From the NCBI GenBank assembly GCA_002269645.1, contig NIVC01000691.1, positions 62,001 through 126,000 of the forward strand: 64,000 nt of DNA, given 5' to 3'. Of this stretch, positions 1 through 43,071 are shown one piece after another. Source of the DNA: Macrostomum lignano (Eukaryota). The position numbers were made by a program, and so were the translations under genes. Within the stretch, counting starts at the first letter, position 1, and every line of letters begins with the position of its first letter. The notes under the pieces are model-generated. The model made no database searches, was not told the DNA's origin, and was given only the letters and a program-made list of their open reading frames with translations.

Positions 1-943
1 GCTCTCTTTGCTGCAGCTCTCTCTGCTGTTGCTCTCTCTGCTGTTGCTCTCTCTGCTGTTGCTCTCTCTGCTGTTGCTCTCTCTGCTGTTTCTCTCTCTG
101 CTGTTGCTCTCTCTGCTGTTGCTCTCTCTGCTGTTGCTCTCTCTGCTGTTGCTCTCTCTGCTGTTGCTCTCTCTGCTGTTTCTCTCTCTGCTGCTGCTCT
201 CTCTGCCGTTGCTGAAGATTATTGAGATACCGTCTCTGCTGCTCATAAGAATCATTTGCTCTATCTTGACCTTGAAATTGACCTTGCTGATTTTTTACGT
301 CTAAAAGTGAATTCTGGTGCGCATTCTTATTGCTTTTAAAATCTTGGTCACTACCATTAGTATCTGTACGGCCAACACTGTGAGCAGCATTGCCAGGCTT
401 CTGATGAGCCGGTGCCCGAGAATCGAATGTTCCGCTCGATCCTCGATCAGACTCGCCAGGCGAAAGAGCTGACGAATAAGAAGCAGACTGAGCGGAACCA
501 CCAGGTACTGTCGGTTTAGCAACACCTGTGCCAGAGTTTGGCCAATTATTGTTGCTACCCGCAGGAGGACTGGCTTCCTTCAACTCAATCGGAGGTGCTC
601 CATCACTCTTGCCACAAACGCTGCATATCCTTCGCGTAGAATCCTCGTTGATGAAAGTGCAGAATTGGCACTGCCAGCCACCGCTGCTGCTAGAAGCAGG
701 TGGCGGAGATGTTGGTTGAGGCGGTGGCGGTCGTTTTGGCGGCGTGCGGCCTGACTGGGGAGATCGTGAAGGACCAGCGGCCGGCCCGGGCTGGTAGGGT
801 CTGGTCTGGTGATTTTTCCGATTCGGATGGTTGTGCCAAATCTGGTCGCAGCTTTTGCACAGCAGATTCCGGCTGCAGCCGGCTGTTTCGCACTGCACTT
901 CGGCTGGGTAATCGCCACAAAAGCTACAGTCTACTGTAGCCAT
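1..943 (-). CDS. HOIP/RNF31-family paralog, 5' part: B-box + NZF zinc finger + QQQRE repeat; runs off the left edge of the window
   Basis: Manual translation from ATG at 943: MATVDCSFCGDYPAEVQCETAGCSRNLLCKSCDQIWHNHPNRKNH (B-box) ... WQCQFCTFINEDSTRRICSVCGK (RanBP2/NZF) ... QQQRE repeats. No stop before position 1, so it is absent from the ORF track. Confidence 0.8.
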   Translation of the reverse strand, partial: MATVDCSFCGDYPAEVQCETAGCSRNLLCKSCDQIWHNHPNRKNHQTRPYQPGPAAGPSRSPQSGRTPPKRPPPPQPTSPPPASSSSGGWQCQFCTFINEDSTRRICSVCGKSDGAPPIELKEASPPAGSNNNWPNSGTGVAKPTVPGGSAQSASYSSALSPGESDRGSSGTFDSRAPAHQKPGNAAHSVGRTDTNGSDQDFKSNKNAHQNSLLDVKNQQGQFQGQDRANDSYEQQRRYLNNLQQRQREQQQREKQQREQQQREQQQREQQQREQQQREQQQREKQQREQQQREQQQREQQQREQQQRELQQRE

Positions 944-4117: not shown

Positions 4118-5719
4118 TTAAGACCGAAGCGGAACTTGGCGCACGATCAGTGCACGCAAAGCTGTCGCGTCTGTGGAAATACTACTCTGAACCTCAATTT
4201 TATGCCTTCTGCAAGTTTCCTTCAACTGCTCAACGTCCATCACCTCAACTGGATCCAAGCGATTCTTGTTGATCAGCGATACAAGGTACTCTTTGTAGTG
4301 CTTGCCGCACAGTTTTGCGTGACCCTCAACGGGTCTGCCGCAAGCTTCGTCAACCAGATTGCCACTCTCTTTCTGCTCCATCACATTGCAGGTACCAGAA
4401 GTGGCGCCTTCTGCAGCCGTCTCGTACTGAACCCCGTGGTCGCTGAGCAGCTTCTGAAGACTTCGCACAGTAAAGTCTCTCAGGTAGAACAGACAGTCTC
4501 TCGGATGCTCGCAGACGAGACCTCGACCGTGCAGTCTTTTGAAAAAGCCGCCGCAACCTGAGCAAAACTCTGCCCGACACGGCGGCCGGCAGGTGAAGTG
4601 CATGCACCCGCCCTTCGCCAGCGCGTATTTGAACTTGCACTTCGGACACTCGATGCCGTTGTTTTCTAGAAACGCTGCCACTCCCTTCGCTTGGTAGTCC
4701 GGATCATTCTCCACCAGCCACTGCTGGAACTGCTCGCAGCTGATTTTCTCGTGCTGCTCTCGCCACTGCTTGCGGCACTGCTTGCACGTGTACTTTGAGC
4801 ACTGGTTGCACTGGAACTTCAGACCCCGCATCTGCTCACTCAGTACAACTCCATTTGGACAGTGGCTGCACCACCGGAAATTCGGGTCCCGCATCAGGTT
4901 CCAATCGCGAAGCCTCTGCTCGAGCATGTTGATCTTGTCAGCCTCGAACCTGATCTCGGCATGCTGGAAGCTTTTCACCTGGATTAGCAGATACTCAAAA
5001 TAGTTCTCCAGCTCCGCTTCGTTCTCAGAGTCCGGTGTGTTACAGATCGGACACTGAAGATGAGACACATGATCGTTGTTGTCCAGACTGGCGGACACAA
5101 AGTTCCGGAAGCAGCTGAAGCACAACTTGCACTGGCAGGAGGCCATCTGGAGAACTTTATGCCTGGGAAAGCTATCAAAACAGATGGGACACTCGTTCTT
5201 GAAGTACGCACTCACAAAGTCCACGTAGTCAAGCTGGTCTCCGCAACTGCGAACAGCTTCGGCCAAATCGTTTGGATCGAAATCCCGGAACTCTGGCTGT
5301 TCGCGAAGCTTAATAAAGTTAGCCGAGTGTTCCAGTTTAGTGAAACTGAATCTTAACATCAAGTCTATCATCTCTTCGTTATTTTCATTGTCCTCATCAA
5401 CATCACTGAGTGACCGAGATGTTAAGCTTAGGAAGGACAGCTCAGACTGCAGCTGCTCTGATTCAGGCGGCGACTCTGACACAAAAAGCAGCCAAGAGCC
5501 GCAGGCGGAGCAATAGTGGCGGCTTCTTGGGTTGAGAAGAGTGCACCTGATGCACAGGTATTGACCAGTGCGCTGGTTTACATCAGTCACAATTTCCTTT
5601 AAGCTGTGACAGGATTCGCAAACTTTGCAGAAGATGCGTCCTTCGCTGACTGGCAGGCAGAAGGCGACAAACTCGTTGTTAAAAGTGCAAATCTTGCACT
5701 CCCAGTTGACGCAATCCAT
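4118..5719 (-). CDS. RNF31-like: HOIP/RNF31-like RBR E3 ligase, short form (2 NZF, RING1-IBR-RING2, LDD), 533 aa
   Basis: CPKCKFKYALAKGGCMHFTC (catalytic Cys/His), HPRDCLFYLRD and EQKE..DEACG..LCGKHYKEYLVSLIN..LDP closely match the human HOIP RING2-LDD. Confidence 0.9.
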   Translation of the reverse strand: MDCVNWECKICTFNNEFVAFCLPVSEGRIFCKVCESCHSLKEIVTDVNQRTGQYLCIRCTLLNPRSRHYCSACGSWLLFVSESPPESEQLQSELSFLSLTSRSLSDVDEDNENNEEMIDLMLRFSFTKLEHSANFIKLREQPEFRDFDPNDLAEAVRSCGDQLDYVDFVSAYFKNECPICFDSFPRHKVLQMASCQCKLCFSCFRNFVSASLDNNDHVSHLQCPICNTPDSENEAELENYFEYLLIQVKSFQHAEIRFEADKINMLEQRLRDWNLMRDPNFRWCSHCPNGVVLSEQMRGLKFQCNQCSKYTCKQCRKQWREQHEKISCEQFQQWLVENDPDYQAKGVAAFLENNGIECPKCKFKYALAKGGCMHFTCRPPCRAEFCSGCGGFFKRLHGRGLVCEHPRDCLFYLRDFTVRSLQKLLSDHGVQYETAAEGATSGTCNVMEQKESGNLVDEACGRPVEGHAKLCGKHYKEYLVSLINKNRLDPVEVMDVEQLKETCRRHKIEVQSSISTDATALRALIVRQVPLRS

Positions 5720-7933: not shown

Positions 7934-9835
7934 TCAACCCCAAATATCTAGGCCACTTTCAAAATCCACGTCATAAGAGTTGAACATCGACTCGGAGCCA
8001 CCGAAAGCGCCATCTGCACCCGATCCACCCTTCGAAGGCGTGGTTTTGCCGCACACAGTGCAAAGAACACGCAAACCATTGGAGACGCTGGGCGCAGTTG
8101 GAGACACGGCGGTGCAGTGCGGGCAGGTAAAGTCAACTGAAGTTGAAATCTCCGACAATGTGGGTGACAAATCGCGACGATTAAAATTAAGCTTCGGTTT
8201 ATTGTTTGACGAAAAAAAATCCAGTCGCATGGGACGCTGGGCGAGACCCGGGTTCAAACATTTCGATGGTGCCACTAGAGGCGCAGATGTAGGTCGCTGC
8301 GCTTTGCCCACCTTACTGCTCATAGGGCCAGCCAGAAAGTCCGGCGCACCTACACGGTCCTTCTTCTTGTTGCCACGCATGGCGCTGGCCAGGGCCTCCT
8401 TGAGGTGCGACTCGCACAGACCCGCCTCCACCACCGGCCTCCCGCACTCCCCGTCCTCCAGACCGCCTCCTGACGTCTCCTTCTGCTCCTGGACGCTGCA
8501 CCGACCTCCAGCGCCCGCCACTCCGACAAGCTCCAGCTCAACGCCCCGATCCAGCGCCGTCTGCCGAACCTTCTCCAACGGCCAGTCTCTGAACGTCTCC
8601 ACACACTCCGACCCGTGGTGGCAGTGCAGTCCCTTGTTCCCGCCGCAGCACTCCTGTCGAACAAACAGACTGCCGCAGTCGCTGCAGAACTCCGCCTTGC
8701 ACTGCCTGCACGTCAGGTGAAGACAGCCGCCTCGAGACAGCTCGAACTGGAAGCCGCACTTTGGACACGAGCTGCCCCGACTCTCCAGGAACTGCGCCAG
8801 TCCGCGCTCGCTCAAGTCCGTCTGCTGACGCCACTCGCCGAACTGCTGGCAGCTCACGCCTCGGTGCCGCTCGTGCCACGCCTTGCCGCACTTCCTGCAC
8901 GTCTCCTTGCCGCAGTGCGGACACCGCACCTGTCTGTCGTGGTGCTCCGACACCTCGAAACCGTTCGAGCACCCGCTGCACCAGCAGAAGTTGTCCGTCA
9001 GCTTCAGTCGCCAGTCGCGCAGTCTCTCATCCAGCTTCTTCATCACTACGGGCTTTAGCTTGCCCGCCAACAACCTCTGCAGCAGCGGAAAGTACTCGCA
9101 CGACGTGTCCGTCAGAGCTCGGTCGTCCAGCTTGTCGCACACCGGACACGTCAGCACCGACACCGAGCTGTCGTGCATCAGGCGCACCTCGATCTGCTGG
9201 CACAGACAGTCGCTGCAGACCTCGCAGCCGCACAGGGGAACCTCGACCAGCTTCTTGTCGTCGATGCACACTGGGCAATCTTTGCTAGCAGTAGTTTCCA
9301 TTGGAGCTGCTTTAGAGTTTCGAATAGAAATAGCTCTGAGCGGTCGAATTTGATCCCACTGCAGCACACCTTCAGTAGCCCTGTGAGTAGGGTAAAACGG
9401 CTTCAAACTCCTAGTGAAAATGTCATTCGCTTCTACAGCACCTGGGTCCCGCTCTTCGCCTATGCATCTTCGAAGACCCAATGTGCTGCTTGTCTCGCTC
9501 ATCCGGGTCCTCGAAAATCGCTGAGACATACTAATGCTCAAAGGTTCGGCTGCTGCATCCGTTTCGGCGTCTCGCAAACTCCACGAAGCACGGGATTCAT
9601 CGTCAAAGCTTTGCCTGTGCTGTTGGTTTTTACGAGGCTTTGGCTTGGGTGCCCGCTCAAGATGCTGTGCTCTCTGCTGTCGCTGGTGCAGATCCAGAAG
9701 CTCCTCACAAGAGACTGACTTGGAACACACGCTGCAGATGATGCGGCTTTTAGGATTTGAAGTGTCGCACATGGCCGAGTTGATAAATGTGCAGTGCTGG
9801 CACTGCCACTCAATGTTTTGGCTAGCTGATGCCAT
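7934..9835 (-). CDS. RNF31-like: HOIP-like RBR E3 ligase, divergent type B (NZF, RBR, truncated LDD, C-terminal NZF)
   Basis: First in-frame ATG at 9835 (MASASQNIEWQCQHCTFIN); CPVC-x-RING1, IBR, CPKCGFQFELSRGGCLHLTC, FRDW, VQEQKE..DGECG..LCESH; C-terminal FTCPHCT...LCTVCGK. Confidence 0.85.
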   Translation of the reverse strand: MASASQNIEWQCQHCTFINSAMCDTSNPKSRIICSVCSKSVSCEELLDLHQRQQRAQHLERAPKPKPRKNQQHRQSFDDESRASWSLRDAETDAAAEPLSISMSQRFSRTRMSETSSTLGLRRCIGEERDPGAVEANDIFTRSLKPFYPTHRATEGVLQWDQIRPLRAISIRNSKAAPMETTASKDCPVCIDDKKLVEVPLCGCEVCSDCLCQQIEVRLMHDSSVSVLTCPVCDKLDDRALTDTSCEYFPLLQRLLAGKLKPVVMKKLDERLRDWRLKLTDNFCWCSGCSNGFEVSEHHDRQVRCPHCGKETCRKCGKAWHERHRGVSCQQFGEWRQQTDLSERGLAQFLESRGSSCPKCGFQFELSRGGCLHLTCRQCKAEFCSDCGSLFVRQECCGGNKGLHCHHGSECVETFRDWPLEKVRQTALDRGVELELVGVAGAGGRCSVQEQKETSGGGLEDGECGRPVVEAGLCESHLKEALASAMRGNKKKDRVGAPDFLAGPMSSKVGKAQRPTSAPLVAPSKCLNPGLAQRPMRLDFFSSNNKPKLNFNRRDLSPTLSEISTSVDFTCPHCTAVSPTAPSVSNGLRVLCTVCGKTTPSKGGSGADGAFGGSESMFNSYDVDFESGLDIWG

Positions 9836-11856
9836 GCGATTTGGTGCTGCAAGCTTGCAAACCTTTGCTGCAAGGAGTTTATTTAAACAAAATTTAGTCA
9901 ACTTTGAACTAAAAGGATAATCAGTTTGAGAAAACAATGTTGGAAAGCTTGCAATATAAATTTCTAAGACTTAGGAGGAACTCAAAAATATCATAGTAAT
10001 GTAATATAATATAGGTAAATAGTATCCTATACTACTCATGTTAGATATATATCATAAGAGCGATTAGATTATGTATATTTTTTCAATAAACATCCGCCCC
10101 ATATGCTCTTTTAGTAGTAAAATTAGCGCTTTCAGCTGTTATCTAATTCAATAGAGAGTGGCATATACAGTGACTTTAGCAGCTCGTAGTAGTACCAGTG
10201 GCCTCTACCATTAGCTAAATATTTTCGTTAACTTTACTATGTAAAACTTATAAAGAAAAAAACGATTTGAGACTCGCAATGCAATGCGAAGGCAATTTAA
10301 ATCTCAAAAGTATATTTTATAAAAATATTTTAAGCCATCTTGTTAAAAATACCGCTGTTGACTTAAAAAAAATCAATTATTGTAGCAAAATATGAACTAG
10401 GATAAAAATAATTGGACAATAAATTTGATTGGCCTAATTTGGAAACTTTTAAGAAACGTATCAACAGTGAGCATACCGGTATACAGGTACACACTTAAGG
10501 TGGAAACTTATGAAGGCGAAGACATAATTCTAATTCTAGACAAATTGGATTTTGAAAAAAAACTTTAAACAAATCAAGAATTTAATACTAAAATCATTAA
10601 GGCTGATTAACATTATCATAGAATGAGCAATCAAGTCGCACTATCGATGTAAAAAGGAATGAAAGCTGCTGTAGGAGTTACGAGCGTAACCACACGAAAT
10701 TGGACCTTTATTTGATTTGATGTCAGTGTAAACAACACTTTGCCTCTTTTGACGAACACACTTAAGAAAACTTTATTTACTAGCAGTCGAAAAATAGTGT
10801 CACGAAAATTTCCTGCAAACAACTGCGTGTAGTGACGATTGAAAGTTTTCAAAATACACTACAAATCGATTGAGCATCAATTGATTGCTTGTTTAAGCTA
10901 ATTCATTTTACTGCCATATTTCATAGAACAAGCTTAAAATCAACTAATTGTCTACGCAGTAAATTGACTCAAATGTAATTAACTGTGTACCTGCAAATGT
11001 CATGCGACACAAAAAAGAAAGGACATCAAAACAACGAGAAACAAATACAAAATGGAAATATATAATAAAAATACTAAACGATGCTTTTTACACGTGCTTT
11101 CTTTGATTTCTTTCTAGCAAGCAGTTTCTGCCTACACTGCTCACTTTGGCAAGTGGCTTTTATCTACTTGTCGAAACTTGTCTCTGACAATGCTCTTAGT
11201 GCTTGAGCAGCTAGAATGCATTGTGCGCTGAAACTTACAAGAAAATATTTTTTTAATTAAGACAAAAATTCGGCCGCAAGTGACGCCCGCCCCTCGGCCC
11301 TCGCCCATACAGCGAAGACGGGGTGAAAGGCCCCTGGCTAGAGGAAGGGGCAGATAAAACGCACGCAAAGTACTCGTACACAGAGTGCACAAAGCTGTCC
11401 CAGAGAGAGCAAAGTGACTCATAATAAAACACACATATGCTTTGCCTACGGTAGTGTAATCAAAATTCTTCCTCGAGAAATCTACACTACCGCCTATCGA
11501 TCAAAAAAGTAAGTGACAATGCGCTAGTATGCAAAATTAAAGTATACAAGGGCTATAAACAGAGAAAAAGTAAAAAACCATCAACGATTCATCACTTGCA
11601 TAAAATCAAAAAGAGTCAGAAGTTATTGAACATAAAAAATTCACAAGACTTCTCACAAAAATCAGCAAAATACATGTTGTTTTAACAAAATTATGAAACA
11701 TTTTAAAACAATAATTTGAACACATACTCGAGACGAGCATTTCAGATTTTGTAACATGGCAATTTAAAAACAAAAGTTAAAGCCGCGAAGGAATGAATAG
11801 CTCGACTAACTGTTTTGTTCATCAACTTTCTACATTTACACCATGGCTTCTTTTTC

Positions 11857-14800
11857 TTAGATACCCCACAGCGGTGGCACCATGTCCTTCAGCCGTTCGC
11901 GGTAAACTTTCATCTTCTCTCTCGCAGCAGAGAGAGAAGGGTTGGAGGCTTTGACTTGTGGCAGGGCCAAACGAAACCTTCTAAACATCTCCAGCAGCTC
12001 ATTCTCATTGGCAACATCTACCAAATCGAGTTTGTTTGCATTGATGAGCTGAATTAGATACTCACGGTAGTGCCTGTCACATATACCTGGCTTGTTATGA
12101 GTAACTTTTTCGGTACAAGGACAGACTGTCAGCTTTCCGTCCATCTTCAAATCAGGAAGCTCACAAGCTTTGCCAACATTTAAGCATGCTTCGCTCACTT
12201 TTACCTTATTTCCCCTCAGCAAATCAAGAAAGGTCGTCTGTTTTACTTGCTTCAAATTAAAGTAGCACTGGCGTTGGTGGTGCACATGAAATCCCTTAAA
12301 CGGGCAGCCTTCGTGAGGTCTCTTCTGAGGGCTTCGACAAAATGGACAGAATGAATGCCCACATCTGCAGTGAAACACAGAATATCCTGATTTGGACACT
12401 CGTTGGTAGCAAAGACTGCAGTTTGGGCAAACCAAATCAAAAGTCAGAAGCTCCATCATCTGATCGTGCAGGTTTGCGTCAGTAGGCGAGAAGCCTTGCT
12501 TCTGAGCAGCTGTGTGCATTTCGTTATAATCTTCTTTTTGTTGAATACCTGCTGCATAATCCCGATAACTGCTGCAGTTTATCCGTTGGTGATCAACCCA
12601 GAAGCCGAAGCATTTCTTGCAGACATCCTGTTTGCAAACTTTGCAGTAACTTTCGCACTGTCGAGTGTCCATTTTCGGTAGTCCACCATTCCTATGAGGA
12701 CAATAGCCATTCGAAGTGTTTACTGCAACTGTCGAGGCATCTTTAGAGGCTTTTGATTTTGTCCCTTTCTTGCCTGCGGCTTCGACCACTTCCCAACCCT
12801 CGTCGCTTTTTTTGCTTGAATTTTCTTCAAGGTGCGCCACTGCATACTCCACAGTGTCAGAGCCAAGCACATCTGCCATTTCCATCAGTTGCATCTTCAT
12901 GAAATCCCGACTATCTTCATCATCGCATACACCCTGGCAGGCAGGGCACTGAATTCTGCTGCTTTTTAGATCAACAAGAAATTTCTTAAAGCACTCTGGA
13001 CACATCTGGCACTCGCATACTGCCATGGCAACAAGTTTGTGACGTGGTAAATCATTCGAACAGCGGTTGCACTTGCGACGCAGTTGGCTCATCAGAGCAT
13101 CGTCTTCGAACGCCAAGTCGCCACACGACTCAATCGCAACTACAAGGTCTGATTCGGAAAACTCTTTAAACTTAGGCATACTTTTGACAACCAGAATTCT
13201 CTCTGCTACCCAGTTTTCTACTCTGAGCTGCAAAGCCAGGTTTTGAGCTTTATCGGACCATTCGGTAGAATCGCTTCCTGCCGCTCCGACTGCAGCACTG
13301 GCGGCTGATGTGGCTGCGGAGGTCAGCATGGACGCAGCAGCAGCGGCTTCACTGCGAGCGACTGCGCCTCCTTTAGTGGCGCCACCAATGAGTTTGGTAA
13401 TGTATGTGCAAGCAGAGCAAATTCCAAGCCCAGTTTCTGGCTGCGATGGAGCCGGGTTCACCAGCGTGCAGTGATTGCAGATCCAGCTGCCTTTGCTTTG
13501 AGAATTGTTTTCTTGGAAATTTTGAGAGGTTACATTTGAAAGAACATTCGTTGTATGATGTCCATGTAGTTGCCGATTCTGTTCTTGCTGTTTCTCTCTC
13601 TGCTGCTGCTCTCTCTGCTGCTGCTCTCTCTGCTGTTGCTCTCTCTGCTGCTGCTCTCTCTGCTGTTGCTCTCTCTGCTGCTGCTCTCTCTGCTGTTGCT
13701 CTCTCTGCTTTCGCTCTCTCTGCTGTTGCTCTCTCTGCTGTTGCTCTCTCTGCTGTTGCTCTGTCTTCTGTAGCTCTCTCAGCTGGTCTCTCAGCTGTTC
13801 TTCTCTCTCCTGTTGCTCTCTCTGCAGCTGTTTCTCTCTCTGCTGCTGCTCTCTCTGCTGTTGCTCTTTCTGCTGCTGCTCTCTCTGCTGCTGCTCTCTT
13901 TGCTGTTGCTCTCTCTGCTGCTGCTGTCTCTGCTGTTGCTCTCTCTGCTTTCGCTCTGTCTTCTGTAGCTCTCTCAGCTGGTCTCTCAGCTGTTCTTCTC
14001 TCTCCTGTTGCTCTCTCTGCAGCTGTTTCTCTCTCTGCTGCTGCTCTCTCTGCTGTTGCTCTTTCTGCTGCTGCTCTCTCTGCTGCTGCTCTCTTTGCTG
14101 TTGCTCTCTCTGCTGCTGCTCTCTCTGCTGTTGCTCTCTCTGCTTTCGCTCTGTCTTCTGTAGCTCTCTCAGCTGGTCTCTCAGCTGTTCTTCTCTCTCC
14201 TGTTGCTCTCTCTGCAGCTGTTTCTCCCTCTGCTGCTGCTCTCTCTGCTGTTGCTCTTTCTGCTGCTGCTCTCTCTGCTGTTGCTCTCTCTGCTGTTGCT
14301 CTCTCAGCTGGTCTCTCAGCTGTTCTTCTCTCTCCTGTTGCTCTTTCAGCTGGTATCTCAGTTGTTCTTCTCTCTCCTGCTGCTCTCTCAGCTGGTCTCT
14401 CAGCTGTTCTTCTCTCTCCTGTTGCTCTCTCAGCTGGTCTCTCAGCTGTTCTCTCAGCTGTTCTTCTTTCTCTTGTTGCTCTCTCAGCTGGTCTCTCAGC
14501 TGTTCTTCTCTCTCCTGTTGCTCTCTCTGGTGCTGGTCGCTCTGTTGCTGCTCCAACATCTGCAGCAGTCTCGCCGCCTCATCATTACCTAGATGAGACT
14601 CCAGTTCGTACACAAGAATCATGGTCGTGTTTCGAGCTACGTGGTCTCCAGACCAGGCCACTCCGCACACCGGACACTCCAGCTGCCCCGGCATTCCGGA
14701 CAGGAAGCTGCAGAAACAGCCACAGCACAGCTCGCACTCGCACGTCGCCATGTGAAACAGCTTGTGACGCGGCATCTGCTTTGAGCACTGGCAACACTGG

Positions 14801-15126
14801 CTTCTCAGGTGCGCCAACAGAGCTACCACATCATCACAGGCCTTCTCGCAAGACTGGATGGAGTCAATGAGGTCAGTATCGGAGAAGTCCTTGAACTCCC
14901 TGAGCTGCTTCACTTCCTGGAGTCGCTCGGTCAGCCAGGTGTCGCAGCGACGCTGGGCCTGAGGCGGCGGCGGCAGCACCTCGACTCGGTGATTCTCAAC
15001 GCTGTGCCAGTTGGTGTGGCAGGACTCGCAGATCAGTTGGAAGCCGCAGCCGGCCTCCAGGCACCGGATTGAGGCGCCTGGGCGGCTGCAGATGAGGCAG
15101 CGCTCAGCAAACATTCGGTGAGCCAT
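11857..15126 (-). CDS. RNF31-like: HOIP-like RBR protein with duplicated UBA-like/RING1 unit, QRE coiled coil and substituted active site (predicted pseudo-ligase)
   Basis: ATG at 15126. Order: B-box-like, RING1 copy 1, QRE repeat, NZF, RING1 copy 2, IBR, RING2 (CPNC..SKSGYSVFHC), LDD (ICDRHYREYLIQLINANKLD). Confidence 0.85.
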   Translation of the reverse strand: MAHRMFAERCLICSRPGASIRCLEAGCGFQLICESCHTNWHSVENHRVEVLPPPPQAQRRCDTWLTERLQEVKQLREFKDFSDTDLIDSIQSCEKACDDVVALLAHLRSQCCQCSKQMPRHKLFHMATCECELCCGCFCSFLSGMPGQLECPVCGVAWSGDHVARNTTMILVYELESHLGNDEAARLLQMLEQQQSDQHQREQQEREEQLRDQLREQQEKEEQLREQLRDQLREQQEREEQLRDQLREQQEREEQLRYQLKEQQEREEQLRDQLREQQQREQQQREQQQKEQQQREQQQREKQLQREQQEREEQLRDQLRELQKTERKQREQQQREQQQREQQQREQQQREQQQKEQQQREQQQREKQLQREQQEREEQLRDQLRELQKTERKQREQQQRQQQQREQQQREQQQREQQQKEQQQREQQQREKQLQREQQEREEQLRDQLRELQKTEQQQREQQQREQQQRERKQREQQQREQQQREQQQREQQQREQQQREQQQREQQQREKQQEQNRQLHGHHTTNVLSNVTSQNFQENNSQSKGSWICNHCTLVNPAPSQPETGLGICSACTYITKLIGGATKGGAVARSEAAAAASMLTSAATSAASAAVGAAGSDSTEWSDKAQNLALQLRVENWVAERILVVKSMPKFKEFSESDLVVAIESCGDLAFEDDALMSQLRRKCNRCSNDLPRHKLVAMAVCECQMCPECFKKFLVDLKSSRIQCPACQGVCDDEDSRDFMKMQLMEMADVLGSDTVEYAVAHLEENSSKKSDEGWEVVEAAGKKGTKSKASKDASTVAVNTSNGYCPHRNGGLPKMDTRQCESYCKVCKQDVCKKCFGFWVDHQRINCSSYRDYAAGIQQKEDYNEMHTAAQKQGFSPTDANLHDQMMELLTFDLVCPNCSLCYQRVSKSGYSVFHCRCGHSFCPFCRSPQKRPHEGCPFKGFHVHHQRQCYFNLKQVKQTTFLDLLRGNKVKVSEACLNVGKACELPDLKMDGKLTVCPCTEKVTHNKPGICDRHYREYLIQLINANKLDLVDVANENELLEMFRRFRLALPQVKASNPSLSAAREKMKVYRERLKDMVPPLWGI
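13585..14530 (-). repeat. Coding QQQRE/QLRE tandem repeat with a 195-bp higher-order unit
   Basis: 15-bp GAGAGAGCAGCAGCA-type units; the marker ttctctctcctgttgctctctctgcagctg recurs at 13801, 13996 and 14191. Confidence 0.9.
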
Positions 15127-16479
15127 GCGTTGCACAACCAAGTTTGCTTGTTGGTCAGGAGCGCTGCATGCATTGAAATAGGGTAGAAGCTTTAAACTCA
15201 ATCAAGAGCAACTGTGGATTGACAAGTTTGAGTAATCTAGCTACGAGAGCATAAACTAAAGAGAAACATTTCAGAGAGTCATTTTTGGAGGGTTTCAAAA
15301 AAATATTCAGATGGGGTGTTGCTTGCTAGGCGATATTGTGAAGAACTAAAAAGCTAAGAATCATTATTAAAGTCAATAAAATATTTCAACGCATTTAGCA
15401 CTTTGAGATGACTTGTCGAGTTTATTTGGCAACGAAAAAGAACAAAGTTTTGGTATTCCCACTGGGAAAACCAAAGTCAGCTGGTTACCCTAAAGGCTAA
15501 GGAGCACCGGTTTAAACCATCTGCTATACAAAATCATCTCATTCAGTATGATACGGTAAGTGCTGTAGTTGTCAACCAGAAAAGTGCTTTAAAAAATCTA
15601 CAAATGCCAATTAGACTACAGACTCACTAATCATTAAAGTTCTGCCTAAGCTCGCCTAGCCTCAACACCCAGCCCTAGCACAGTGGCGCAGGTCACGTCC
15701 TCCGTATTATCTGAGAGTTGCACTACTGTATTCGTGCCTGTCCATGCTTTTAACCTGTTAATGTGCATTGATTGTTTTCTACCTTTACCAAAACTATTGA
15801 TTTTTCACGACTGTTTCATTACGATTTAGTTTTTTAAAAACTGAGTTTTGATACCGCATCACACAGTGAACCATAATTTGAAGTTGAGAAAAGAACAAAA
15901 ACAAAAACGTTTCGTACCTTATAAATTAACACTTCAGCAAAACGCTTTAACAGCAAAACATTAAAATCTGGAGTATCTTAATAATGAAAAACAAAGACTA
16001 TATGGATACAGCACAGCTATCTTTGTCTTGAATCATACATTTAAATTTAAGGTAAATATCACGTTTATAAAATATAATACCATTGTATAAAATCACAGAG
16101 AATATTTTGGTATATTCTGTGTTGAAAAACGGAATAATTGAACTTTTTGTTTACAAAAACAACTCAGCATTGAATCACTCAAATTTGGTTGGAACAAATC
16201 CATCACATTTCTCAATGCAGTGTTGGAAGCCCTGTACTCGACAGGAGTTCTAGTCGAGTCCTGCGTAGACTGTAGGCCTTCCCTAGATTTCGATCTGAAA
16301 GGGTGAAGTTTTTCGCGCTAAGAAACATTGTTTTACTCTACATGACACAATTAAATAAAACTTCTATGGTGTAATCTATTGTCCGCCCTACTCGTCAAGT
16401 TGCTATACAGCAACAATCAATGAAAATGCATAATCAAACAAAAGCTGAGGATACGACCAGCCAATAATAGGAAGCAGTG

Positions 16480-20272: not shown

Positions 20273-23200
20273 TCACTTTACAAGTGGCTGCTGCTGAGCA
20301 ATCAAAGCTCGCAGGGCTGCCACTTTGTTCTCGCCGACTCCCGAGCAGTCAATTCCTTCACGCAGACACGCTCCCCTGAGCTCGCCTTCGTCCATCACAC
20401 TGACGGGATCCAGCTTTTGCTTGTTCACCAGCGATACAAGGTACTCAATGTAGTGCTTCTCGCACAGGTTCGCCTGGCCCGGTTTCACGTCGACACCGCA
20501 CGGCTCATCCTTCAAACCGCTTCCAACTTCCTTTTGCTCCATCACTTCGCATTTGTCAACTGAGTTCTCAGCTTCGCTCTCGAACTCCACCTTGTGTAAA
20601 TTCAGCAGCAGCTGGAGCCGGTCCACTCCAAAGTCTCTTAGATAGAACAGACAGTCTCTCGGGTGTTTGCAACTCAGGCCCCTGCCCTGAATGATTGTAT
20701 ACTCGCCATCACAGCCTGCGCAGAATTGAAAGCGGCACATTCGGCAGGTGAAGTGCAGACAGCCACCCTTTGCTAAGGCATATTGAAAGCGACAATTAGG
20801 GCACTCAATGCCATTGGCTTGTAGAAAAAATCCAACACCTTTCTCCTGATATTCTGGATCATTGTATTTTAGCCAAATCTCAAACAGGTCACAGTCAATG
20901 TCCTCATGCTGATCTTTCCACGGCTTTTTGCACTCTTTGCAGGTAAAGGCCTGACAATTAGGACATTGGAACTTCAAGCCGATCATGATCTCTGCAAGTA
21001 AAATTTCAAAGCCACAGCTGCTGCACCTGCACCATCGATAGTTTGGATCTTGAAAAAAATTCCACTCTGTGATCTTCTTCTCGACAAGATCCAAAACGTT
21101 TTTATCAAATTTATATTCAGATTGTTTAAAGCGGATGTCATTGATCTGTTGCAGAAGCATTTTGAAATGGCTCTCCAGCTTTTCTATTTGATTTGGATCC
21201 GGAACTTGACAGATTGGGCAACAAAGATCTGTGACATGCCCGCCACCTGTCATAGCTGTTGTCACGAAGTTACGAAAGCACTCGTGGCACAACTCGCACT
21301 GACATGAAGCCATAGGCAATAACTTGTGTCTTGGAAACTCTCCACCACAGCAACTGCACTCGCACCCCAAGAAACTTTTCACGAAGTCAACGTAATCCCG
21401 CCTGTTATTGCTGCTCTTCGCAGCCTCCGCTAGGTCATAAAGATCGCGGCCCTTAAACTCGCTGTTTTGCATAAGCTGAAAAAGTATTTTAGCATCGCTA
21501 ATCTTTCTTAAGTCGAACTCTCCCATCAGACAGTGGAGGGAGGTCTCACTTTCATTCATTCTGTCGAACTTAGGTGGCTCCTGGCCCTCCTTGCGGAACA
21601 AAAATTGTGCGAAATCTCTAAAGACCCGTTCGTTTTCGGCTTGATAAAAATTAGTAAAATCACCATCGCCCTGAAAATCAAGGTTCACCTCATGGGCTGA
21701 CTGCAGCAACTCTGGGCAGTTCTCCGCAATCCAAGCGACCTTTGCTTTGTGACGCTGGGCGCAAATCTGAATAGCCGCTTCAAGGTCGCATGTGTTGTCC
21801 AGCACAGCAGATGCGATATCGTCAAATGAGGGTCGCACACCTGCATTATCATCCTGCAGCACTTTCGCTACCTCGCAACCGACCTGCTCAATCAGTGCCG
21901 GCCATTTTTCTGCGACCCAGACCTTGAATCCAGCCTCCGACTGGGCGCCATCATCAGCAGTTGCCACCAAATACAGCTGGCCCAGCCGACCATCGAAGCC
22001 AGAAAATTCGATATCTTGTATAAGCTTCATCAGCTGTCTGTTTGCAGCCGCCTCCATCTCTGGATTTCGCTGACGGGCTACTGGCTTGACCTCAAAGGGA
22101 AGCTTGATACCGTCACTGCCACCGAGTTCACGTGGAGTTTGGCAAATTGCGCAAGACTTTGCAGTAATGGGATTAAGCATTGTACATGCGGAGCAAGACC
22201 AATCTTGATCATTAGACAGCGGCTGTCTTACGGGTTGAAAAACTTTATTCAAATCATTGTCATAAAGCTGCTCCTCTTTCTGATGTTGCTCCCTCTGATG
22301 ATGCTCTCTCTCAAGTAGCTCTCTTTCACGCTCAATTAGCTCTATCTCACGCTCCTTATCACGCTCTCTCTCCCACTCTCTCTCACGTTGCTCTCTCTGC
22401 TGCTGCTCTCTCTGATTTTGATTTCTTTGCTTTTGCTCTCTCTGCTGCTGCTCCCTCTGGTGTTGCTTTCTCCCAAGTAGCTCTCTCTTACGCTCAAGTA
22501 GCTTTCTCTCACGCTCAATTAGCTCTCTTTCACGCTCAATTAGCTCTATCTCGCGCTCCTTATCACGCTCGCTCTCCCATTCTCTCTCCCGTTGCTCTCT
22601 CTGCTGCTGCTCTATCTCCCGTTGCTCTCTCTGCTGCTGCTCTCTCTGCTGCTGCTCTATCTCCCGTTGCTCTCTCTGCTGCTGCTCTCTCTGCTGCTGC
22701 TCTCTCTGCTGCTGCTCTCTCTTCTGCTGCTGCTCTCTCTTCTGCTGCTGCTCTCTCTTCTGCTGCTCTCTCTGCTGCTGCTCTCTCTCCCGTTGCTCTC
22801 TCTGCTGCTGCTCTCTCTCCCGTTGCTCTCTCTCCCGTTGCTCTCTCTGCTGCTGCTCTATCTCCCGTTGCTCTCTCTCCCGTTGCTCTCTCTGCTGCTG
22901 CTCTCTCTGCTGCTGCTCTCTCTGCTGCTGCTCTCTCTGCTGCTGCTCTCTCTGCTGCTGCTCTCTCTGCTGCTGCTCTCTCTGCTGCTGCTCTCTCTGC
23001 TGCTGCTCTCTCTTCTGCTGCTCTCTCTGCTGCTGCTCTCTCTGCTGCTGCTCTCTCTGCTGCTGCTCTCTCTGCTGCTGCTCTCTCTTCTGCTGCTCTC
23101 TCTGCTGCTCAAAAAAATCATTTGCTTTATTTAGAACTTCAAATTGACCTCGCTGATTCAAGTGCAAAAACAAATTCTGCTGCTCTCTCAGCTTCTTCTT

Positions 23201-24250
23201 GTTGCCTTGCATGGCGCTGACCAGGGCCTCTTTGAGGTGCGACTCGCACAGACCCGCCTTGACCACTGGCCTCCCGCACTCCCCGTCCTCCAGACCGCCT
23301 CCTGACGTCTCCTTCTGCTCCTGGACGCTGCACCGACCTCCAGTGCCCGCCACTCCGACAAGCTCCAGCTGAACGCCCCGCTCCAGCGCCGTCTGCCGAA
23401 CCTTCTCCAACGGCCAGTCTCTGAACGTCTCCACGCACTCCGACCCGTGGTGGCAGTGGAGTCCCTTGTTACCGCCGCAGCACTCCTGTCGAACAAACAG
23501 ACTGCCGCAGTCGCTGCAGAACTCCGCCTTGCACTGCCTGCACGTCAGGTGAAGACAGCCGCCTCGAGACAGCTCGAACTGGAAGCCGCACTTTGGACAC
23601 GAGCTGCCCCGACTCTCCAGGAACTGCGCCAGTCCGCGCTCGCTCAAGTCCGTCTGCTGACGCCACTCGCCGAACTTCTGGCAGCTCACGCCTCGGTGCC
23701 GCTCGTGCCACGCCTTGCCGCACTTCCTGCACGTCTCCTTGCCGCAGTGCGGGCACCGCACCTGCCTGTCGTGGTGCTCCGACACCTCGAAACCGTTCGA
23801 GCACCCGCTGCACCAGCAGAAGTTGTCCGTCAGCTTCAGTCGCCAGTCGCGCAGTCTCTCATCAAGCTTCTTCATCACTGCGGGCTTCAGCTGGCCCGCC
23901 AGCAGCCTCCGAAGCAGCGGAAAGTACTCGCACGACGTGTCCGTCAGAGCTCGGTCGTCCAGCTTGTCGCACACCGGACACGTCAGCACCGACACCGAGC
24001 TGTCGTTCATCAGGCGCACCTCGATCTGCTGGCACAGACAGTCGCTGCAGACCTCGCAGCCGCACAGGGGAACCTCGACCAGCTTCTTCTCGTCGATGCA
24101 CACCGGGCACTCTGCTGATGTCTGCAGCTCTGAGAGGTCAGTGGATTTTCCGCACACTGAGCAGATCAGCCTTCTGTGCAGTTGGCGACTCAGTGCTACA
24201 TTATTGATGAAGGCACAACACGGACACTGCCACTGCGATAGGCGTGGCAT
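20273..24250 (-). CDS. RNF31-like: Chimeric double-RBR HOIP-like E3 ligase, 1325 aa (NZF, type-B RBR, QRE coil, NZF, UBA, type-A RBR-LDD)
   Basis: Single ORF with two complete RING1-IBR-RING2 units: FELSRGGCLHLTC and YALAKGGCLHFTC...HPRDCLFYLRD...LCEKHYIEYLVSLVN..LDP. Confidence 0.88.
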   Translation of the reverse strand: MPRLSQWQCPCCAFINNVALSRQLHRRLICSVCGKSTDLSELQTSAECPVCIDEKKLVEVPLCGCEVCSDCLCQQIEVRLMNDSSVSVLTCPVCDKLDDRALTDTSCEYFPLLRRLLAGQLKPAVMKKLDERLRDWRLKLTDNFCWCSGCSNGFEVSEHHDRQVRCPHCGKETCRKCGKAWHERHRGVSCQKFGEWRQQTDLSERGLAQFLESRGSSCPKCGFQFELSRGGCLHLTCRQCKAEFCSDCGSLFVRQECCGGNKGLHCHHGSECVETFRDWPLEKVRQTALERGVQLELVGVAGTGGRCSVQEQKETSGGGLEDGECGRPVVKAGLCESHLKEALVSAMQGNKKKLREQQNLFLHLNQRGQFEVLNKANDFFEQQREQQKREQQQREQQQREQQQREQQQREQQKREQQQREQQQREQQQREQQQREQQQREQQQREQQQREQQQREQREREQREIEQQQREQREREQREREQQQREQREREQQQREQQKREQQQKREQQQKREQQQREQQQREQQQREQREIEQQQREQQQREQREIEQQQREQREREWESERDKEREIELIERERELIERERKLLERKRELLGRKQHQREQQQREQKQRNQNQREQQQREQREREWERERDKEREIELIERERELLEREHHQREQHQKEEQLYDNDLNKVFQPVRQPLSNDQDWSCSACTMLNPITAKSCAICQTPRELGGSDGIKLPFEVKPVARQRNPEMEAAANRQLMKLIQDIEFSGFDGRLGQLYLVATADDGAQSEAGFKVWVAEKWPALIEQVGCEVAKVLQDDNAGVRPSFDDIASAVLDNTCDLEAAIQICAQRHKAKVAWIAENCPELLQSAHEVNLDFQGDGDFTNFYQAENERVFRDFAQFLFRKEGQEPPKFDRMNESETSLHCLMGEFDLRKISDAKILFQLMQNSEFKGRDLYDLAEAAKSSNNRRDYVDFVKSFLGCECSCCGGEFPRHKLLPMASCQCELCHECFRNFVTTAMTGGGHVTDLCCPICQVPDPNQIEKLESHFKMLLQQINDIRFKQSEYKFDKNVLDLVEKKITEWNFFQDPNYRWCRCSSCGFEILLAEIMIGLKFQCPNCQAFTCKECKKPWKDQHEDIDCDLFEIWLKYNDPEYQEKGVGFFLQANGIECPNCRFQYALAKGGCLHFTCRMCRFQFCAGCDGEYTIIQGRGLSCKHPRDCLFYLRDFGVDRLQLLLNLHKVEFESEAENSVDKCEVMEQKEVGSGLKDEPCGVDVKPGQANLCEKHYIEYLVSLVNKQKLDPVSVMDEGELRGACLREGIDCSGVGENKVAALRALIAQQQPLVK
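22290..23110 (-). repeat. Coding QQQRE/ERE repeat
   Basis: Runs of ctctctctgctgctg on the plus strand, inside ORF 20273-24250. Confidence 0.9.
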
Positions 24251-25898: not shown

Positions 25899-28133
25899 CT
25901 AATTCTGTTGTTGATAGTGGTAAGATTTTAGATTCTGTTGAGTCGCATTTATTGGCTGAAACGGGCTCGTGAACTGCTGCATTCTTGAGCTCATGCTCTG
26001 CATTGGCGGTACTGGTGAGTTCATGCTCTGCATTGGCTGCATTCTTGAGTTCATGCTCTGCATTGGCGGTACTGGTGAGTTCATGCTCTGCATTGGCGGT
26101 ACTGGTGAGTTCATGCTCTGCATTGGCGGTACTGGTGAGTTCATGCTCTGCATTGGCTGCATTCTTGAGTTCATGCTCTGCATTGGCGGTACTTGTAAGT
26201 TCATGCTCTGCATTGGCGGTACTGGTGAGTTCATGCTCTGCATTGGCGGTACTGGTGAGTTCATGCTCTGCATTGGCTGCATTGAGTTCATGCTCTGCAT
26301 TGGCTGCATTGAGTTCATGCTCTGCATTGGCTGCATTGAGTTCATGCTCTGCATTGGCTGCATTGAGTTCATGCTCTGCATTGGCTGCATTGAGTTCATG
26401 CTCTGCATTGGCTGCATTGAGTTCATGCTCTGCATTGGCTGCATTGAGTTCATGCTCTGCATTGGCTGCATTGAGTTCAAGCTCTGCATTGGCTGCATTG
26501 AGTTCATGCTCTGCATTGGCTGTCTGTAATGCGACGGTCTCAAGCTCTGATTCGGCAGCAGAGGCGGTGGAGGCCGAGCGAACCAGTTAGTCACAGAAGG
26601 TATGGAAGTCCTGACTGCCTGCAACGCTGTTGTGCCACCTCCAGGCCTTTGATTCGAGGTCACAGAAGCGGCAGCTGCTGGTGAGTCGCACATCTCACAG
26701 CTGGCAGGCGAACCGGATTCAACGTTGACCGGCGAGTTGACATTGTGGCACAGGCTGCAGATCCACGGCTGCTGCGGAGCGGCCTCCTGCGGCGTAGAAG
26801 TCGGCAGTAACGGCGGAGGCAGGAGCGTCATCATTTCAATGAGCATCGGAGTGAGCTTGAACTCCACTGGACTGGATGCGGCAGGGGCGGCGGCGGCGGT
26901 GACTGCCTGCTTGACTTTCCTGCCACGCATGGCGCTGGCCAGGGCCTCCTTGAGGTGCGACTCGCACAGACCCGACTCGACGACCGGCCTCCCGCACTCC
27001 CCGTCCTCCAGACCGCCTCCTGATGTCTCCTTCTGCTCCTGGATGCTGCACCGACCTCCAGCGACCGCCACTCCGACAAGCTCCAGCTGAACGCCCCGCT
27101 CCAGCGCCGTCTGCCGAACCTTCTCCAACGGCCAGTCTCTGAACGTCTCCACGCACTCCGACCCGTGGTGGCAGTGGAGTCCCTTGTTCCCGCCGCAGCA
27201 CTCCTGTCGAACAAACAGACTGCCGCAGTCGCTGCAGAACTCCGCCTTGCACTGCCTGCACGTCAGGTGAAGACAGCCGCCTCGAGACAGCTCGAACTGG
27301 AAGCCGCACTTTGGACACGAGCTGCCCCGACTCTCCAGGAACTGCGCCAGTCCGCGCTCGCTCAAGTCCGTCTGCTGACGCCACTCGCCGAACTGCTGGC
27401 AGCTCACGCCTCGGTGCCGCTCGTGCCACGCCTTGCCGCACTTCCTGCACGTCTCCTTGCCGCAGTGCGGACACCGGATCGCCAACTCCTCGACGTTGTC
27501 GTCAACTTCAAAGCCGAATGCGCAGCCGCTGCACCACATGAAGTTGCGGCTTCGCTCCAGACGCCAGTCGCGCAGTCTGTCGTCGAGCTGCTGCATCAGG
27601 TCGCGGCTGAGCCGGCCCGCTAGCAGACTCCGCAGCTGGGGAAAGTACTCACAGCTGGGATCGGCCAGGGTGTCCGAATCTGGCCGGCTGCAAACCGGAC
27701 AAGCAAGCCGGTCAGCCGAGCCGTGACTGCGCAAGCTGACTCGGACGAATCTACACAGACAGTCGCTGCAGAGCCGACAGCCGCACAGAGGGACTGTCAG
27801 AAGTGTTAGCTGCGACTCCAGGCACAGCGGACAGTCGCCACAGTCGGAGTAATCGGCAACCGCAGTCGGTGCAGCGTGGGGAACGCCAACGGGCTCGCTA
27901 GATTTGCCGCAGACTTCGCAGATGAGTCGACTGGAACCGGCGGTGCGACGCGTCTCAGCCAGCTGATTCTCGTAGGTGCAGTGACGGCAGCGCCAAGTGG
28001 CAGCGCTGCTGCTGTTCTTCTTGACAGTTGCCTTGTTTTTATGACTTTTTTGTTTTTGTTTTTCATTCTGATGCAGCTGGAATGAGGCTGAATGATTGCC
28101 TCTACGTTTGGAGCTGCTGACGCTCGATGTGGC
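25899..28133 (-). CDS. RNF31-like: HOIP-like type-B RBR E3 ligase with C-terminal NZF and PMQSMNS repeat tail; start probably in an unidentified upstream exon
   Basis: WRCRHCTYEN..LICEVCGK (NZF), RING1, IBR, FELSRGGCLHLTC, WICSLCHNVN (NZF). No in-frame ATG upstream of the domains; candidate acceptor TTATTCCAG|GCC at 28133. Confidence 0.8.
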   Translation of the reverse strand, partial: ATSSVSSSKRRGNHSASFQLHQNEKQKQKSHKNKATVKKNSSSAATWRCRHCTYENQLAETRRTAGSSRLICEVCGKSSEPVGVPHAAPTAVADYSDCGDCPLCLESQLTLLTVPLCGCRLCSDCLCRFVRVSLRSHGSADRLACPVCSRPDSDTLADPSCEYFPQLRSLLAGRLSRDLMQQLDDRLRDWRLERSRNFMWCSGCAFGFEVDDNVEELAIRCPHCGKETCRKCGKAWHERHRGVSCQQFGEWRQQTDLSERGLAQFLESRGSSCPKCGFQFELSRGGCLHLTCRQCKAEFCSDCGSLFVRQECCGGNKGLHCHHGSECVETFRDWPLEKVRQTALERGVQLELVGVAVAGGRCSIQEQKETSGGGLEDGECGRPVVESGLCESHLKEALASAMRGRKVKQAVTAAAAPAASSPVEFKLTPMLIEMMTLLPPPLLPTSTPQEAAPQQPWICSLCHNVNSPVNVESGSPASCEMCDSPAAAASVTSNQRPGGGTTALQAVRTSIPSVTNWFARPPPPLLPNQSLRPSHYRQPMQSMNSMQPMQSLNSMQPMQSMNSMQPMQSMNSMQPMQSMNSMQPMQSMNSMQPMQSMNSMQPMQSMNSMQPMQSMNSMQPMQSMNSPVPPMQSMNSPVPPMQSMNLQVPPMQSMNSRMQPMQSMNSPVPPMQSMNSPVPPMQSMNSPVPPMQSMNSRMQPMQSMNSPVPPMQSMSSRMQQFTSPFQPINATQQNLKSYHYQQQN
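25975..26520 (-). repeat. Coding minisatellite: 27-bp (PMQSMNSMQ) and 33-bp (PMQSMNSPVPP) units
   Basis: gagttcatgctctgcattggc repeated about 19 times with two alternative spacers. Confidence 0.9.
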
Positions 28134-28292
28134 CTGGAATAATATCACAGTATTTTTAACAATGTGTACCAGCTTCTATAATAATACTTTCCTAATTCCA
28201 TCGTATATGCCCTTTTCTGAGAAAACTTCTAACGTCAACTGAAGTGTACAACTTATTTATTTAATATCTAAAGTTGGTTTCTTAACAATTTA

Positions 28293-40520: not shown

Positions 40521-41006
40521 CACTCCGCAAAAGTGACACGGAGCCAAAAAGGTGAGAAGTCTCTTTTTCAGTTCCATAATTCACTGATGAATTTAAAAAA
40601 ATGTTTAGAGTAAAAACTGAGCTTGAGTGCTTCAGGCCTCCAGTGGCCTTCAGGATCGTGGCGGCCCTTCAACCCCGCACTGGGGGGAAGGGGAGATACA
40701 GAAAGGTTCAGGCATTCATTGACCGGATTGAGTAGGCTGGAGACAATGGGCTGCAAGCGTAGCACAAAGGAGAGCCAGCCATCGCTTTATCAACCTGAGC
40801 GGTGCTTTTTTTGCAATTTCGCTCAAACGAATCGCCACGCGCTCTCAGCTCGGCCAAGCGAATCGCCTGCCGGCTAAGAGCAACTCTGCGACTCTCTGCT
40901 TCTGAAGCAAAAAAACCCGACTCGCTTGAGTTCACTTTGGGCCGAAATGAGAGCCATGGGAGTTCTGCGATGTGCTTTGACGACTGCCGCTCTGGTAGCT
41001 GCACAC

Positions 41007-43071
<2,065 letters not shown>

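Follow-up and report, generated by a model that had tools for sequence, protein, structure and literature searches.

Introduction

In RING-between-RING (RBR) E3 ligases such as HOIP (RNF31), the first RING domain, RING1, is the docking site for the ubiquitin-loaded E2 (E2~Ub), and among the pseudoenzymes of the ubiquitin system is OTULINL/FAM105A. RBR function requires the active-site cysteine, and H887 is needed for aminolysis (PMC7458406). The pseudo-E2 UEV and the pseudo-deubiquitinase (pseudo-DUB) Rpn8 retain a catalytic fold and act by binding (PMC10211241), and RING pseudoligases are known among the TRIM proteins (bioRxiv 10.1101/2024.10.15.614675). According to a review of pseudoenzymes no HECT pseudoenzyme is known, and the same review mentions none of the RBR class (PMC10211241). 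Here we describe a gene from a 64,000-nucleotide stretch of the genome of the flatworm Macrostomum lignano (assembly GCA_002269645.1, contig NIVC01000691.1, positions 62,001 to 126,000; this whole stretch is called the window hereafter), which encodes a HOIP-like protein that has no cysteine at the catalytic position (11857..15126, minus strand). Neither a natural Cys-less RBR nor a description of this M. lignano locus was reported in the literature that we searched. On balance we consider it probable that the protein is a HOIP (RNF31)-derived pseudo-ligase, one of an M. lignano-specific multi-copy family that has kept its scaffold and acts without catalysis.

The protein shares with human HOIP/RNF31 (5EDV, 4LJO) the order zinc finger (ZnF), NZF (a candidate in the flatworm protein), UBA-region tail, RING1, IBR, RING2 with a zinc-finger insert, and LDD; the zinc ligands are conserved and its LDD matches PF18091. 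Unlike human HOIP, it lacks the equivalents of C885, H887 and Q896, carries KQ in place of R935/D936, has no PUB or UBA_HOIP domain detectable with Pfam, and contains insertions of ~20 and 17 residues flanking the IBR. It further differs in having an extra N-terminal unit of UBA-tail and RING1, a 324-residue REQQQ coil and an intronless gene. The UEV pseudo-E2s (Mms2/Uev1a), pseudo-DUBs (Rpn8), OTULINL/FAM105A and the TRIM RING pseudoligases resemble it in having kept the fold and lost the catalytic residue, and none of them is an RBR.

Results

The C-terminal 414 residues of the protein align with the RBR-LDD of human RNF31 in a phmmer search of the Protein Data Bank (PDB) (5edv, E 2.3e-20; 4ljo, E 6.9e-16), the 5edv match covering RING1 and IBR-RING2-LDD. 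In this alignment the segment CPNCSLCYQRVSKSGYSVFHCRCGHSFCPFC, which contains the motif SKSGYSVFHC, faces the active-site stretch of the human protein. When human numbering is set by a chain offset of 692 (C699 of QECAVC is residue 7 of the 5edv chain), the equivalent of C885 is Tyr915, whose codon reads TAT (12384-12382). Val917 stands at H887 and a serine at Q896, where the family consensus is H with E/Q/D. The acceptor pair R935/D936 (YLRDW) is replaced by Lys959/Gln960 (FNLKQ, 12247-12252), a position that reads RD in 100% of the other aligned family representatives. The codon reading and the alignment thus bear out the first-pass annotation of this DNA, which had described a HOIP paralog with Tyr at C885, Val at H887 and KQ at R935/D936.

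The loss falls specifically on functional residues. In an exhaustive search with HMMER, 1.84 billion cluster representatives were screened and 61 family members aligned, and positions were called conserved when at least 85% of the aligned HOIP-family members agreed; the comparison of zinc ligands drew on 57 representatives. The window protein keeps 50 of the 70 conserved positions in this alignment. Among these are all conserved Cys and His other than the catalytic pair (28/28), and none of the five catalytic and acceptor residues (G800, C802, H804, R846 and D847 in the numbering of PAA78395.1, the GenBank entry for this gene; G800 is the first Gly of the GGC motif). These 28 structural Cys/His survive at only ~25% identity to human HOIP. 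The catalytic Cys itself is kept in 128 of the 136 HOIP-family RING2-LDD segments recovered by the exhaustive search; the exceptions are the family described here, the M. lignano proteins PAA67416.1/PAA73089.1, a Ser-bearing spider protein, one segment that is probably misaligned and two fragments with a gap there.

The domains, all encoded on the minus strand, can be followed from the N-terminus as follows. A B-box-like zinc finger (aa 10-46, 14989..15099), homologous to the N-terminal ZnF of HOIP and to the ZnF near Met1 of a related protein, P0060, precedes UBA-like tail a (aa 61-110, 14797..14946), which corresponds to the helical segment ahead of RING1 in HOIP paralogs, and RING1a (aa 111-155, 14662..14796; 8/8 Cys ligands). 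The minisatellite-encoded (REQQQ)n coil (aa 193-516, 13579..14550) is followed by an NZF-type (RanBP2-type) zinc finger (aa 546-573, 13408..13491), in which CxxC...CxxC with 'CTLVN' is visible and whose PF00641 match (E 0.002-0.005) falls below the gathering score. Next come UBA-like tail b (aa 629-685, 13072..13242), RING1b (aa 686-731, 12934..13071; 8/8 Cys ligands) and a divergent IBR (aa 808-851, 12574..12705). In the IBR the second Cys of 'WCxxC' is gone (YCPH-R) and seven of the eight canonical ligands remain. The RING2 core (aa 899-930, 12337..12432) is without the catalytic triad (Tyr915 at 12382..12384, Val917, Ser), and where 'HCxxC' would be expected it has the shorter 'HCRC'. Its zinc-finger insert (aa 931-954, 12265..12336) keeps the H-x-H-H...C ligands. 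The LDD (11860..12264) bears K959/Q960 and retains the 'CDRHYREYL' motif and the C/C/C/H zinc site. Thus the earlier description of the 1089-residue frame and the zinc ligands as largely intact stands for the 28 conserved Cys/His and has to be qualified for the IBR cysteine and the shortened RING2 spacing.

Profile searches see only part of this architecture. When the whole protein was submitted to Pfam, neither RBR nor LDD was matched, owing to the repeat; with the coil left out, the LDD was recovered (PF18091, E 7.8e-10, scoring 39.2 bits where the cutoff is 23), and IBR/IBR_1 and RING2 went undetected with the coil removed as well. No Pfam match was obtained in this protein to the PUB domain and the UBA pair, through which OTULIN/SPATA2 and HOIL-1/SHARPIN are recruited, and only the short helical tail before RING1 remains; the sole match to PF16678 (UBA_HOIP) among the HOIP-like proteins of the window is in the neighbour of 1180 aa at 30601-34143.

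The open reading frame (ORF) itself spans 11857..15201 on the minus strand (1114 aa counted from TTG). Its first Met, at 15126, gives 1089 aa plus stop without an intron (complete CDS 11857..15126) and aligns with Met1 of P0060. GenBank holds the product as PAA78395.1 ("hypothetical protein BOX15_Mlig011956g1, partial", 976 aa), which is identical to the window ORF save for 125 aa of repeat that are spliced out. No frameshift or stop was found in the window copy. A plus-strand ORF of 488 aa at 13404-14870 was set aside as an artefact, being an antisense reading of the minisatellite.

The gene does not stand alone. With the modules of the window protein as tblastn queries, the dead module (NZF, UBA-tail, RING1b, IBR, the inactivated RING2, LDD) turned up seven times on three contigs of the one assembly, the paralogous contigs (loci L005 and L006) being reached from homeologs of a 533-aa neighbour (P0003). 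A word-indexed protein search had yielded a single relative when queried with the C-terminal part and no relative of the N-terminal module, missing the paralogs found later; a metagenome scan with an alignment of the dead family gave 207 pattern hits, none of which was confirmed. Open frames of at least 550 codons persist in six of the seven copies. The family recombines, and within it one copy is frameshifted and one truncated.

Not one of the seven copies has Cys at the catalytic position, and in every copy Val stands at H887 and KQ at RD. At the active-site loop four copies have SKSGVPVFHC, one has SKSGSLVFHC, the broken copy SKSGVFVFHC and the window gene SKSGYSVFHC; the catalytic-position codon is GTT (Val) in five copies including the broken one, AGC (Ser) in one and TAT in the window gene. 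Because the other copies read GTT (five) or AGC (one) and none has Cys, Val is the ancestral state of the family, the Cys having been lost before the family diversified, and the Tyr is a secondary change (GTT CCT to TAT TCT) rather than a TGT-to-TAT hit. The idea that a Cys-to-Tyr change was the primary inactivating event consequently does not survive, and whether sequencing reads show TGT at this codon, which had been named as a refutation, becomes moot since the Cys was lost before the family diversified. In the six nucleotides at 12379-12384 and their equivalents in L005 and L006, the codon pairs observed are GTT CCT, TAT TCT, AGC CTT and GTT TTT. Three to four of the six nucleotides of this former active-site dipeptide are changed in two 'syn'-type copies against a background divergence of ~7%, and the flanks (SKSG, VFHC) are invariant among the copies. 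Such a hotspot could reflect total loss of constraint, multinucleotide mutation or adaptive change of an interface.

The window contig bears two of the copies, the gene described above and a second dead-HOIP gene, W_down, with an annotated product of 984 aa. Its first 314 codons lie at window positions 943-2 on the minus strand (1..943) and cover a ZnF, a Pro-rich region and an NZF. The rest of this gene, a coil and a dead RBR-LDD with SKSGVPVFHC and a single RING1, lies beyond the window start (L002, 14714-17725). P0001 (M. lignano BOX15_Mlig027647g1; locus L001, contig NIVC01000762.1) is 74% identical to the window protein, and the N-terminal 660 nt of copy A at L001 are 96% identical to the window without indels. 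At L001 (5671-10732) the ZnF, UBA-tail, RING1a, coil and NZF still form a 730-aa open frame. The N-terminal module alone may be functional, as in P0060.

Synonymous divergence (dS) between dead-module copies is 0.10-0.21, and the adjacent region of the 533-aa gene differs by 3-4% between the window and L001, L005 and L006. Published single-nucleotide polymorphism (SNP) divergence between the M. lignano subgenomes is ~1.4-2.5% (PMC10733133). Because the divergence of the copies exceeds this value, either the cluster predates the genome duplication or gene conversion between non-allelic copies has scrambled it.

The ratio of non-synonymous to synonymous rates (dN/dS, omega) indicates that the family is constrained. 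When the six intact copies are compared in pairs, omega is 0.44-0.61 over the dS range given above, and pooling three non-overlapping pairs gives 0.49 (151 synonymous vs 287 non-synonymous changes, p = 3e-10). The values are structured by domain: omega is 0.21 in the UBA-tail, 0.36 in RING1b, 0.30 in the IBR, 0.42 in RING2 with its zinc-finger insert and 0.46 in the LDD, and 0.72-0.82, not significant, in three linker regions. In the N-terminal module, compared between the window and the L001 copy, omega is 0.13-0.26. The C-terminal comparison with L001 copy A gives 0.57 overall and 0.72, not significant, in RING2-LDD; the near-neutrality that this two-copy comparison suggested was discarded as misleading, copy A being a pseudogene, and the six-copy analysis replaced it. 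In neutral simulations the probability of finding no stop in the C-terminal half of the window gene was ~0.03, indels not yet counted. The folded domains of the family (UBA-tail, RING1, IBR, RING2 and LDD) are thus under purifying selection and the linkers not, which agrees with the first-pass annotation in its view of a maintained pseudo-enzyme.

The two UBA-tail+RING1 units, a and b, are 38% identical (E 2e-28), are each other's closest relatives and share a 5-6-residue loop deletion. They are separated by the coil, 324 aa in which Q makes up 44%, E 22% and R 18% and in which 47 E(i)-R/K(i+4) pairs occur, and which is predicted to form a charged helical spacer of ~320 residues. Its coding array (13586-14553) is built from a 15-bp tandem repeat within a 195-bp higher-order unit at 91% identity. 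This DNA is 79-86% identical to that of the coil at 22267-23110 in a neighbouring gene, and outside the coil no DNA similarity between the gene and its window neighbours was found.

The combination of modules around the coil varies among the relatives. In the 'down'-type copies the coil and dead module stand behind another N-terminus (ZnF, Pro-rich region, NZF), leaving one RING1. The N-terminal module of the window protein (ZnF, UBA-tail, RING1a, helix) is 45% identical to P0060 and colinear with it from Met1; past this module P0060 runs on into NZFs and a repeat of another kind, and is without an RBR C-terminus. At L001 a "coil-NZF-linker" unit is itself present three times. We suggest that the (REQQQ)n minisatellite may act as a recombination joint at which whole modules would be swapped between genes, and that recombination within it could have fused a RING1-only module (ZnF, UBA-tail, RING1a), of which P0060 is a free-standing example, to the dead module. 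On the simplest reading a RING1-only gene and a gene for a dead RBR-LDD would then have merged into the window gene, which would have two RING1 domains because these modules were joined. The duplicated unit with an intervening QRE coil that had been noted before is thus present, and it is its origin that reads differently, as a probable fusion of modules through the minisatellite and not an internal tandem duplication.

Other HOIP-family proteins have also lost the cysteine. The M. lignano proteins PAA67416.1 and PAA73089.1 (P0061/P0140; L003 6001-8094 on NIVC01001484.1 and L004 6001-8097 on NIVC01001037.1) are, like the window protein, HOIP-derived with ZnF, NZF, UBA-tail and RING1. Their dead RING2 reads 'SKSTADHIAC', with Ala at the Cys position, and KN stands for RD. 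In contrast to the window protein, to which they are ~29% identical in RING2-LDD, they have no IBR, no coil and a single RING1. Both are intact, 95% identical to each other, with an omega of 0.48 between the pair. The two M. lignano dead groups cluster together in a neighbour-joining tree with long branches, which may be an artefact of long-branch attraction. The spider protein, GIX67345.1 from Caerostris darwini (P0050), is also a HOIP-family RBR-LDD with a residue other than Cys (Ser) at the catalytic position. Unlike the window protein it retains RD together with most residues around the active site, and its lineage is unrelated. It could represent an independent loss, or else an annotated fragment of a far larger RNF31 gene (a cluster mate has 4049 aa).

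The window gene is one of six complete, intronless HOIP/RNF31-like ORFs arranged head to tail on the minus strand. The five neighbours (4118-5719, 7934-9937, 20273-24250, 25899-28148 and 30601-34143) share with it the strand, the tandem cluster, the absence of introns and the derivation from HOIP; the one at 20273-24250 has the coil minisatellite in common with it. GGC-x-H and RD are present in all five, and their Pfam matches are to IBR/IBR_1/LDD. The earlier supposition that the neighbours are active is accordingly upheld at the level of sequence. In the ORF at 20273-24250 (1325 aa) the REQQQ minisatellite (22267-23110) joins two RBR-LDD modules, each of them complete and in possession of the catalytic Cys, His and RD. 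No gene is annotated there on the contig, and at L001 its N-terminal module is a separate gene of 487 aa. The 749-aa HOIP-like ORF at 25899-28148 ends in a long (PMQSMNS)n-type repeat (25899-26600, minus strand), and only a fragment of 75 aa is annotated. All six HOIP-like genes (4118-34143) are single-exon, where the M. lignano genome averages 4.9 introns per gene (PMC5730564); the cluster may have arisen from a retrocopy and later tandem duplication.

The rest of the window holds features unrelated to the HOIP cluster, namely an ORF at 43673-45508 (plus strand) that ends in C2H2 zinc fingers after a repeat, and ankyrin-repeat-like ORFs at 53548-55368 (plus strand). Large simple-sequence arrays at 39600-43500, 46800-48200 and 63000-63700, which include ~2.5 kb of (TCTA)-type microsatellite and a ~21-bp satellite reading THFGAAD / LILAPQT, give rise to long spurious ORFs on both strands.

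Discussion

These results place the window protein outside the catalytic HOIPs. As all seven copies are without the nucleophile, the predicted protein cannot run the canonical RBR mechanism, in which ubiquitin passes from E2~Ub to the RING2 Cys and on to Met1 of ubiquitin. It lacks the catalytic features that define the HOIP family, and we therefore class it from its sequence with the pseudo-ligases, as one derived from HOIP, and not with the HOIP ligases. At the level of the family, the domain-structured omega, the stop-free frame in the simulations and the pattern of 28/28 structural against 0/5 catalytic residues support the view that the module is dead and maintained, since together they form a pseudoenzyme signature and not that of a decaying pseudogene.

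Several observations weigh against this reading. The C-terminal 1.7 kb of L001 copy A, 87% identical to the window, contain indels of 1, 1, 8 and 2 bp and two in-frame TGA codons, and L6_syn is severed from its N-terminal part by a stop; because of this frameshifted and this truncated copy, the dead module is dispensable in at least some copies. An omega of ~0.5 is high for a constrained protein. Replacements between the window and L001, polarised with distant outgroups, show no asymmetry (17 vs 15, with 66 sites unpolarised). The dN/dS check that the first-pass annotation had proposed thus succeeds for the family (0.49) and does not isolate the window branch: constraint on the window copy's own terminal branch is not separable from that on the family, and the support is at family level only. 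The mosaic similarity among copies points to gene conversion, which complicates the dS estimates and leaves the pairs not fully independent. An AlphaFold2 model of the C-terminal 414 aa from an eight-sequence alignment was set aside (mean pLDDT 51, pTM 0.37), its surfaces not being assessable. The GenBank annotation of GCA_002269645.1 was derived from StringTie/TACO and de novo transcripts (PMC5730564). PAA78395.1 would by implication have RNA evidence because that annotation is transcript-based, and this evidence is not copy-specific; expression of the window gene appears to rest solely on the existence of the gene model, and the underlying reads could be multi-mapping. The supplement tables searched held no expression values for the gene.

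Some of these points would be expected if the gene were a young, still-open pseudogene, a neutral relic of duplication and recombination whose open frame is luck, helped by a stop-free repeat. The degraded L001 copy A, the truncated L6_syn, the non-significant omega of 0.72 in RING2-LDD against copy A, the freely varying dipeptide at the former active site and the failure of Pfam to recognise the IBR and RING2 all fit this explanation. Luck would, however, have to extend to frames of at least 550 codons in six of seven copies and to a C-terminal half that stays stop-free with a neutral probability of ~0.03 before indels are considered. Neutral decay also sits poorly with a pooled omega of 0.49 among intact copies (p = 3e-10) that is lowest in the zinc domains, and with the survival of all 28 structural Cys/His at ~25% identity to human HOIP. 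We regard a pseudogene as unlikely.

A second explanation keeps the protein as an E3 ligase that works by another route, either with its RING1 domains as canonical RINGs or with another nucleophile, such as the Ser of L5_syn or a different Cys. Both RING1 domains have eight ligands and are the most constrained parts of the protein (omega 0.13-0.36). Canonical RING ligases, however, carry an Arg/Lys 'linchpin' after the last RING ligand, and here that residue is Gly (CPVCG) or Gln (CPACQ), human HOIP having CPACG. Because neither RING1 has gained a basic linchpin, we see no sign in the sequence that either was converted to a canonical RING ligase. As to the nucleophile, RBR triads are not uniform, RNF216 being active without the His (PMC7458406), and one copy does have Ser at the Cys position; yet the active-site Cys is essential in RBRs (PMC7458406), the Val of most copies cannot act as a nucleophile, and the remaining RING2 cysteines are zinc ligands. 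A ligase of this kind is distinctly unlikely.

HOIP has a role in immunity and is a target of bacterial effectors, and the dead copy might be an immune decoy, that is, bait for pathogen effectors aimed at the LUBAC catalytic site. Diversification of the bait would then account for the high omega and the hyper-variable loop. A multi-copy, recombining, lineage-specific family with omega ~0.5 has the look of such a system, as do the changes at three to four of six nucleotides in the former active-site codons of the two 'syn' copies over the ~7% background, and the immune role of HOIP and its targeting by effectors would agree with it. On the other hand, there is no site-model evidence that selection was positive, this host has no known pathogen or effector, and the clustered changes could equally be multinucleotide mutations at an unconstrained site, so that we hold a decoy to be very unlikely. 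That the missing Cys is an error of the PacBio-based assembly, which is long-read based and highly redundant (PMC5730564), is effectively refuted: Cys is missing from each of seven copies that were assembled independently on three contigs and that have Val for H887 and KQ for RD in common, TAT, GTT and AGC differ from TGT/TGC by substitutions and not indels, and because no copy has Cys a sequencing error at 12382-12384 would be irrelevant to the conclusion.

If the protein is a maintained pseudo-ligase, selection would preserve its binding surfaces, namely the two RING1 domains, the NZF-like finger, the RING2-LDD fold and the charged spacer. The two RING1 domains and the NZF could bind E2~Ub and/or ubiquitin chains, spaced by the long charged helix. 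The protein might then serve as an adaptor, or compete with the active HOIP paralogs, be it for E2~Ub, for chains of ubiquitin or for the partners of those paralogs, and the functions proposed for it in the first-pass annotation, an E2~Ub sink, a scaffold or a dominant negative, are plausible as putative roles. A more far-reaching version can be offered only tentatively: this may be the first natural RBR pseudo-ligase family, in which the Cys was lost long ago, several expressed copies are selected, the expanded set of Met1-chain ligases is regulated through binding of E2~Ub or ubiquitin, and the former active-site loop has been repurposed as a fast-evolving interaction surface. Pseudoenzymes of the ubiquitin system are already known; what would be new here is a pseudoenzyme inside the RBR class.

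HECT and RBR E3 ligases are usually thought to need their catalytic Cys, and a maintained dead HOIP module would show a non-catalytic use of the RBR-LDD fold. The locus would also be an example of a coding minisatellite serving as the joint for shuffling domain modules between tandem paralogs. Five active paralogs adjoin the gene and the flatworm is amenable to transgenesis and RNA interference (RNAi), so the effect of a dead RBR on linear-ubiquitin signalling would be directly testable in M. lignano.

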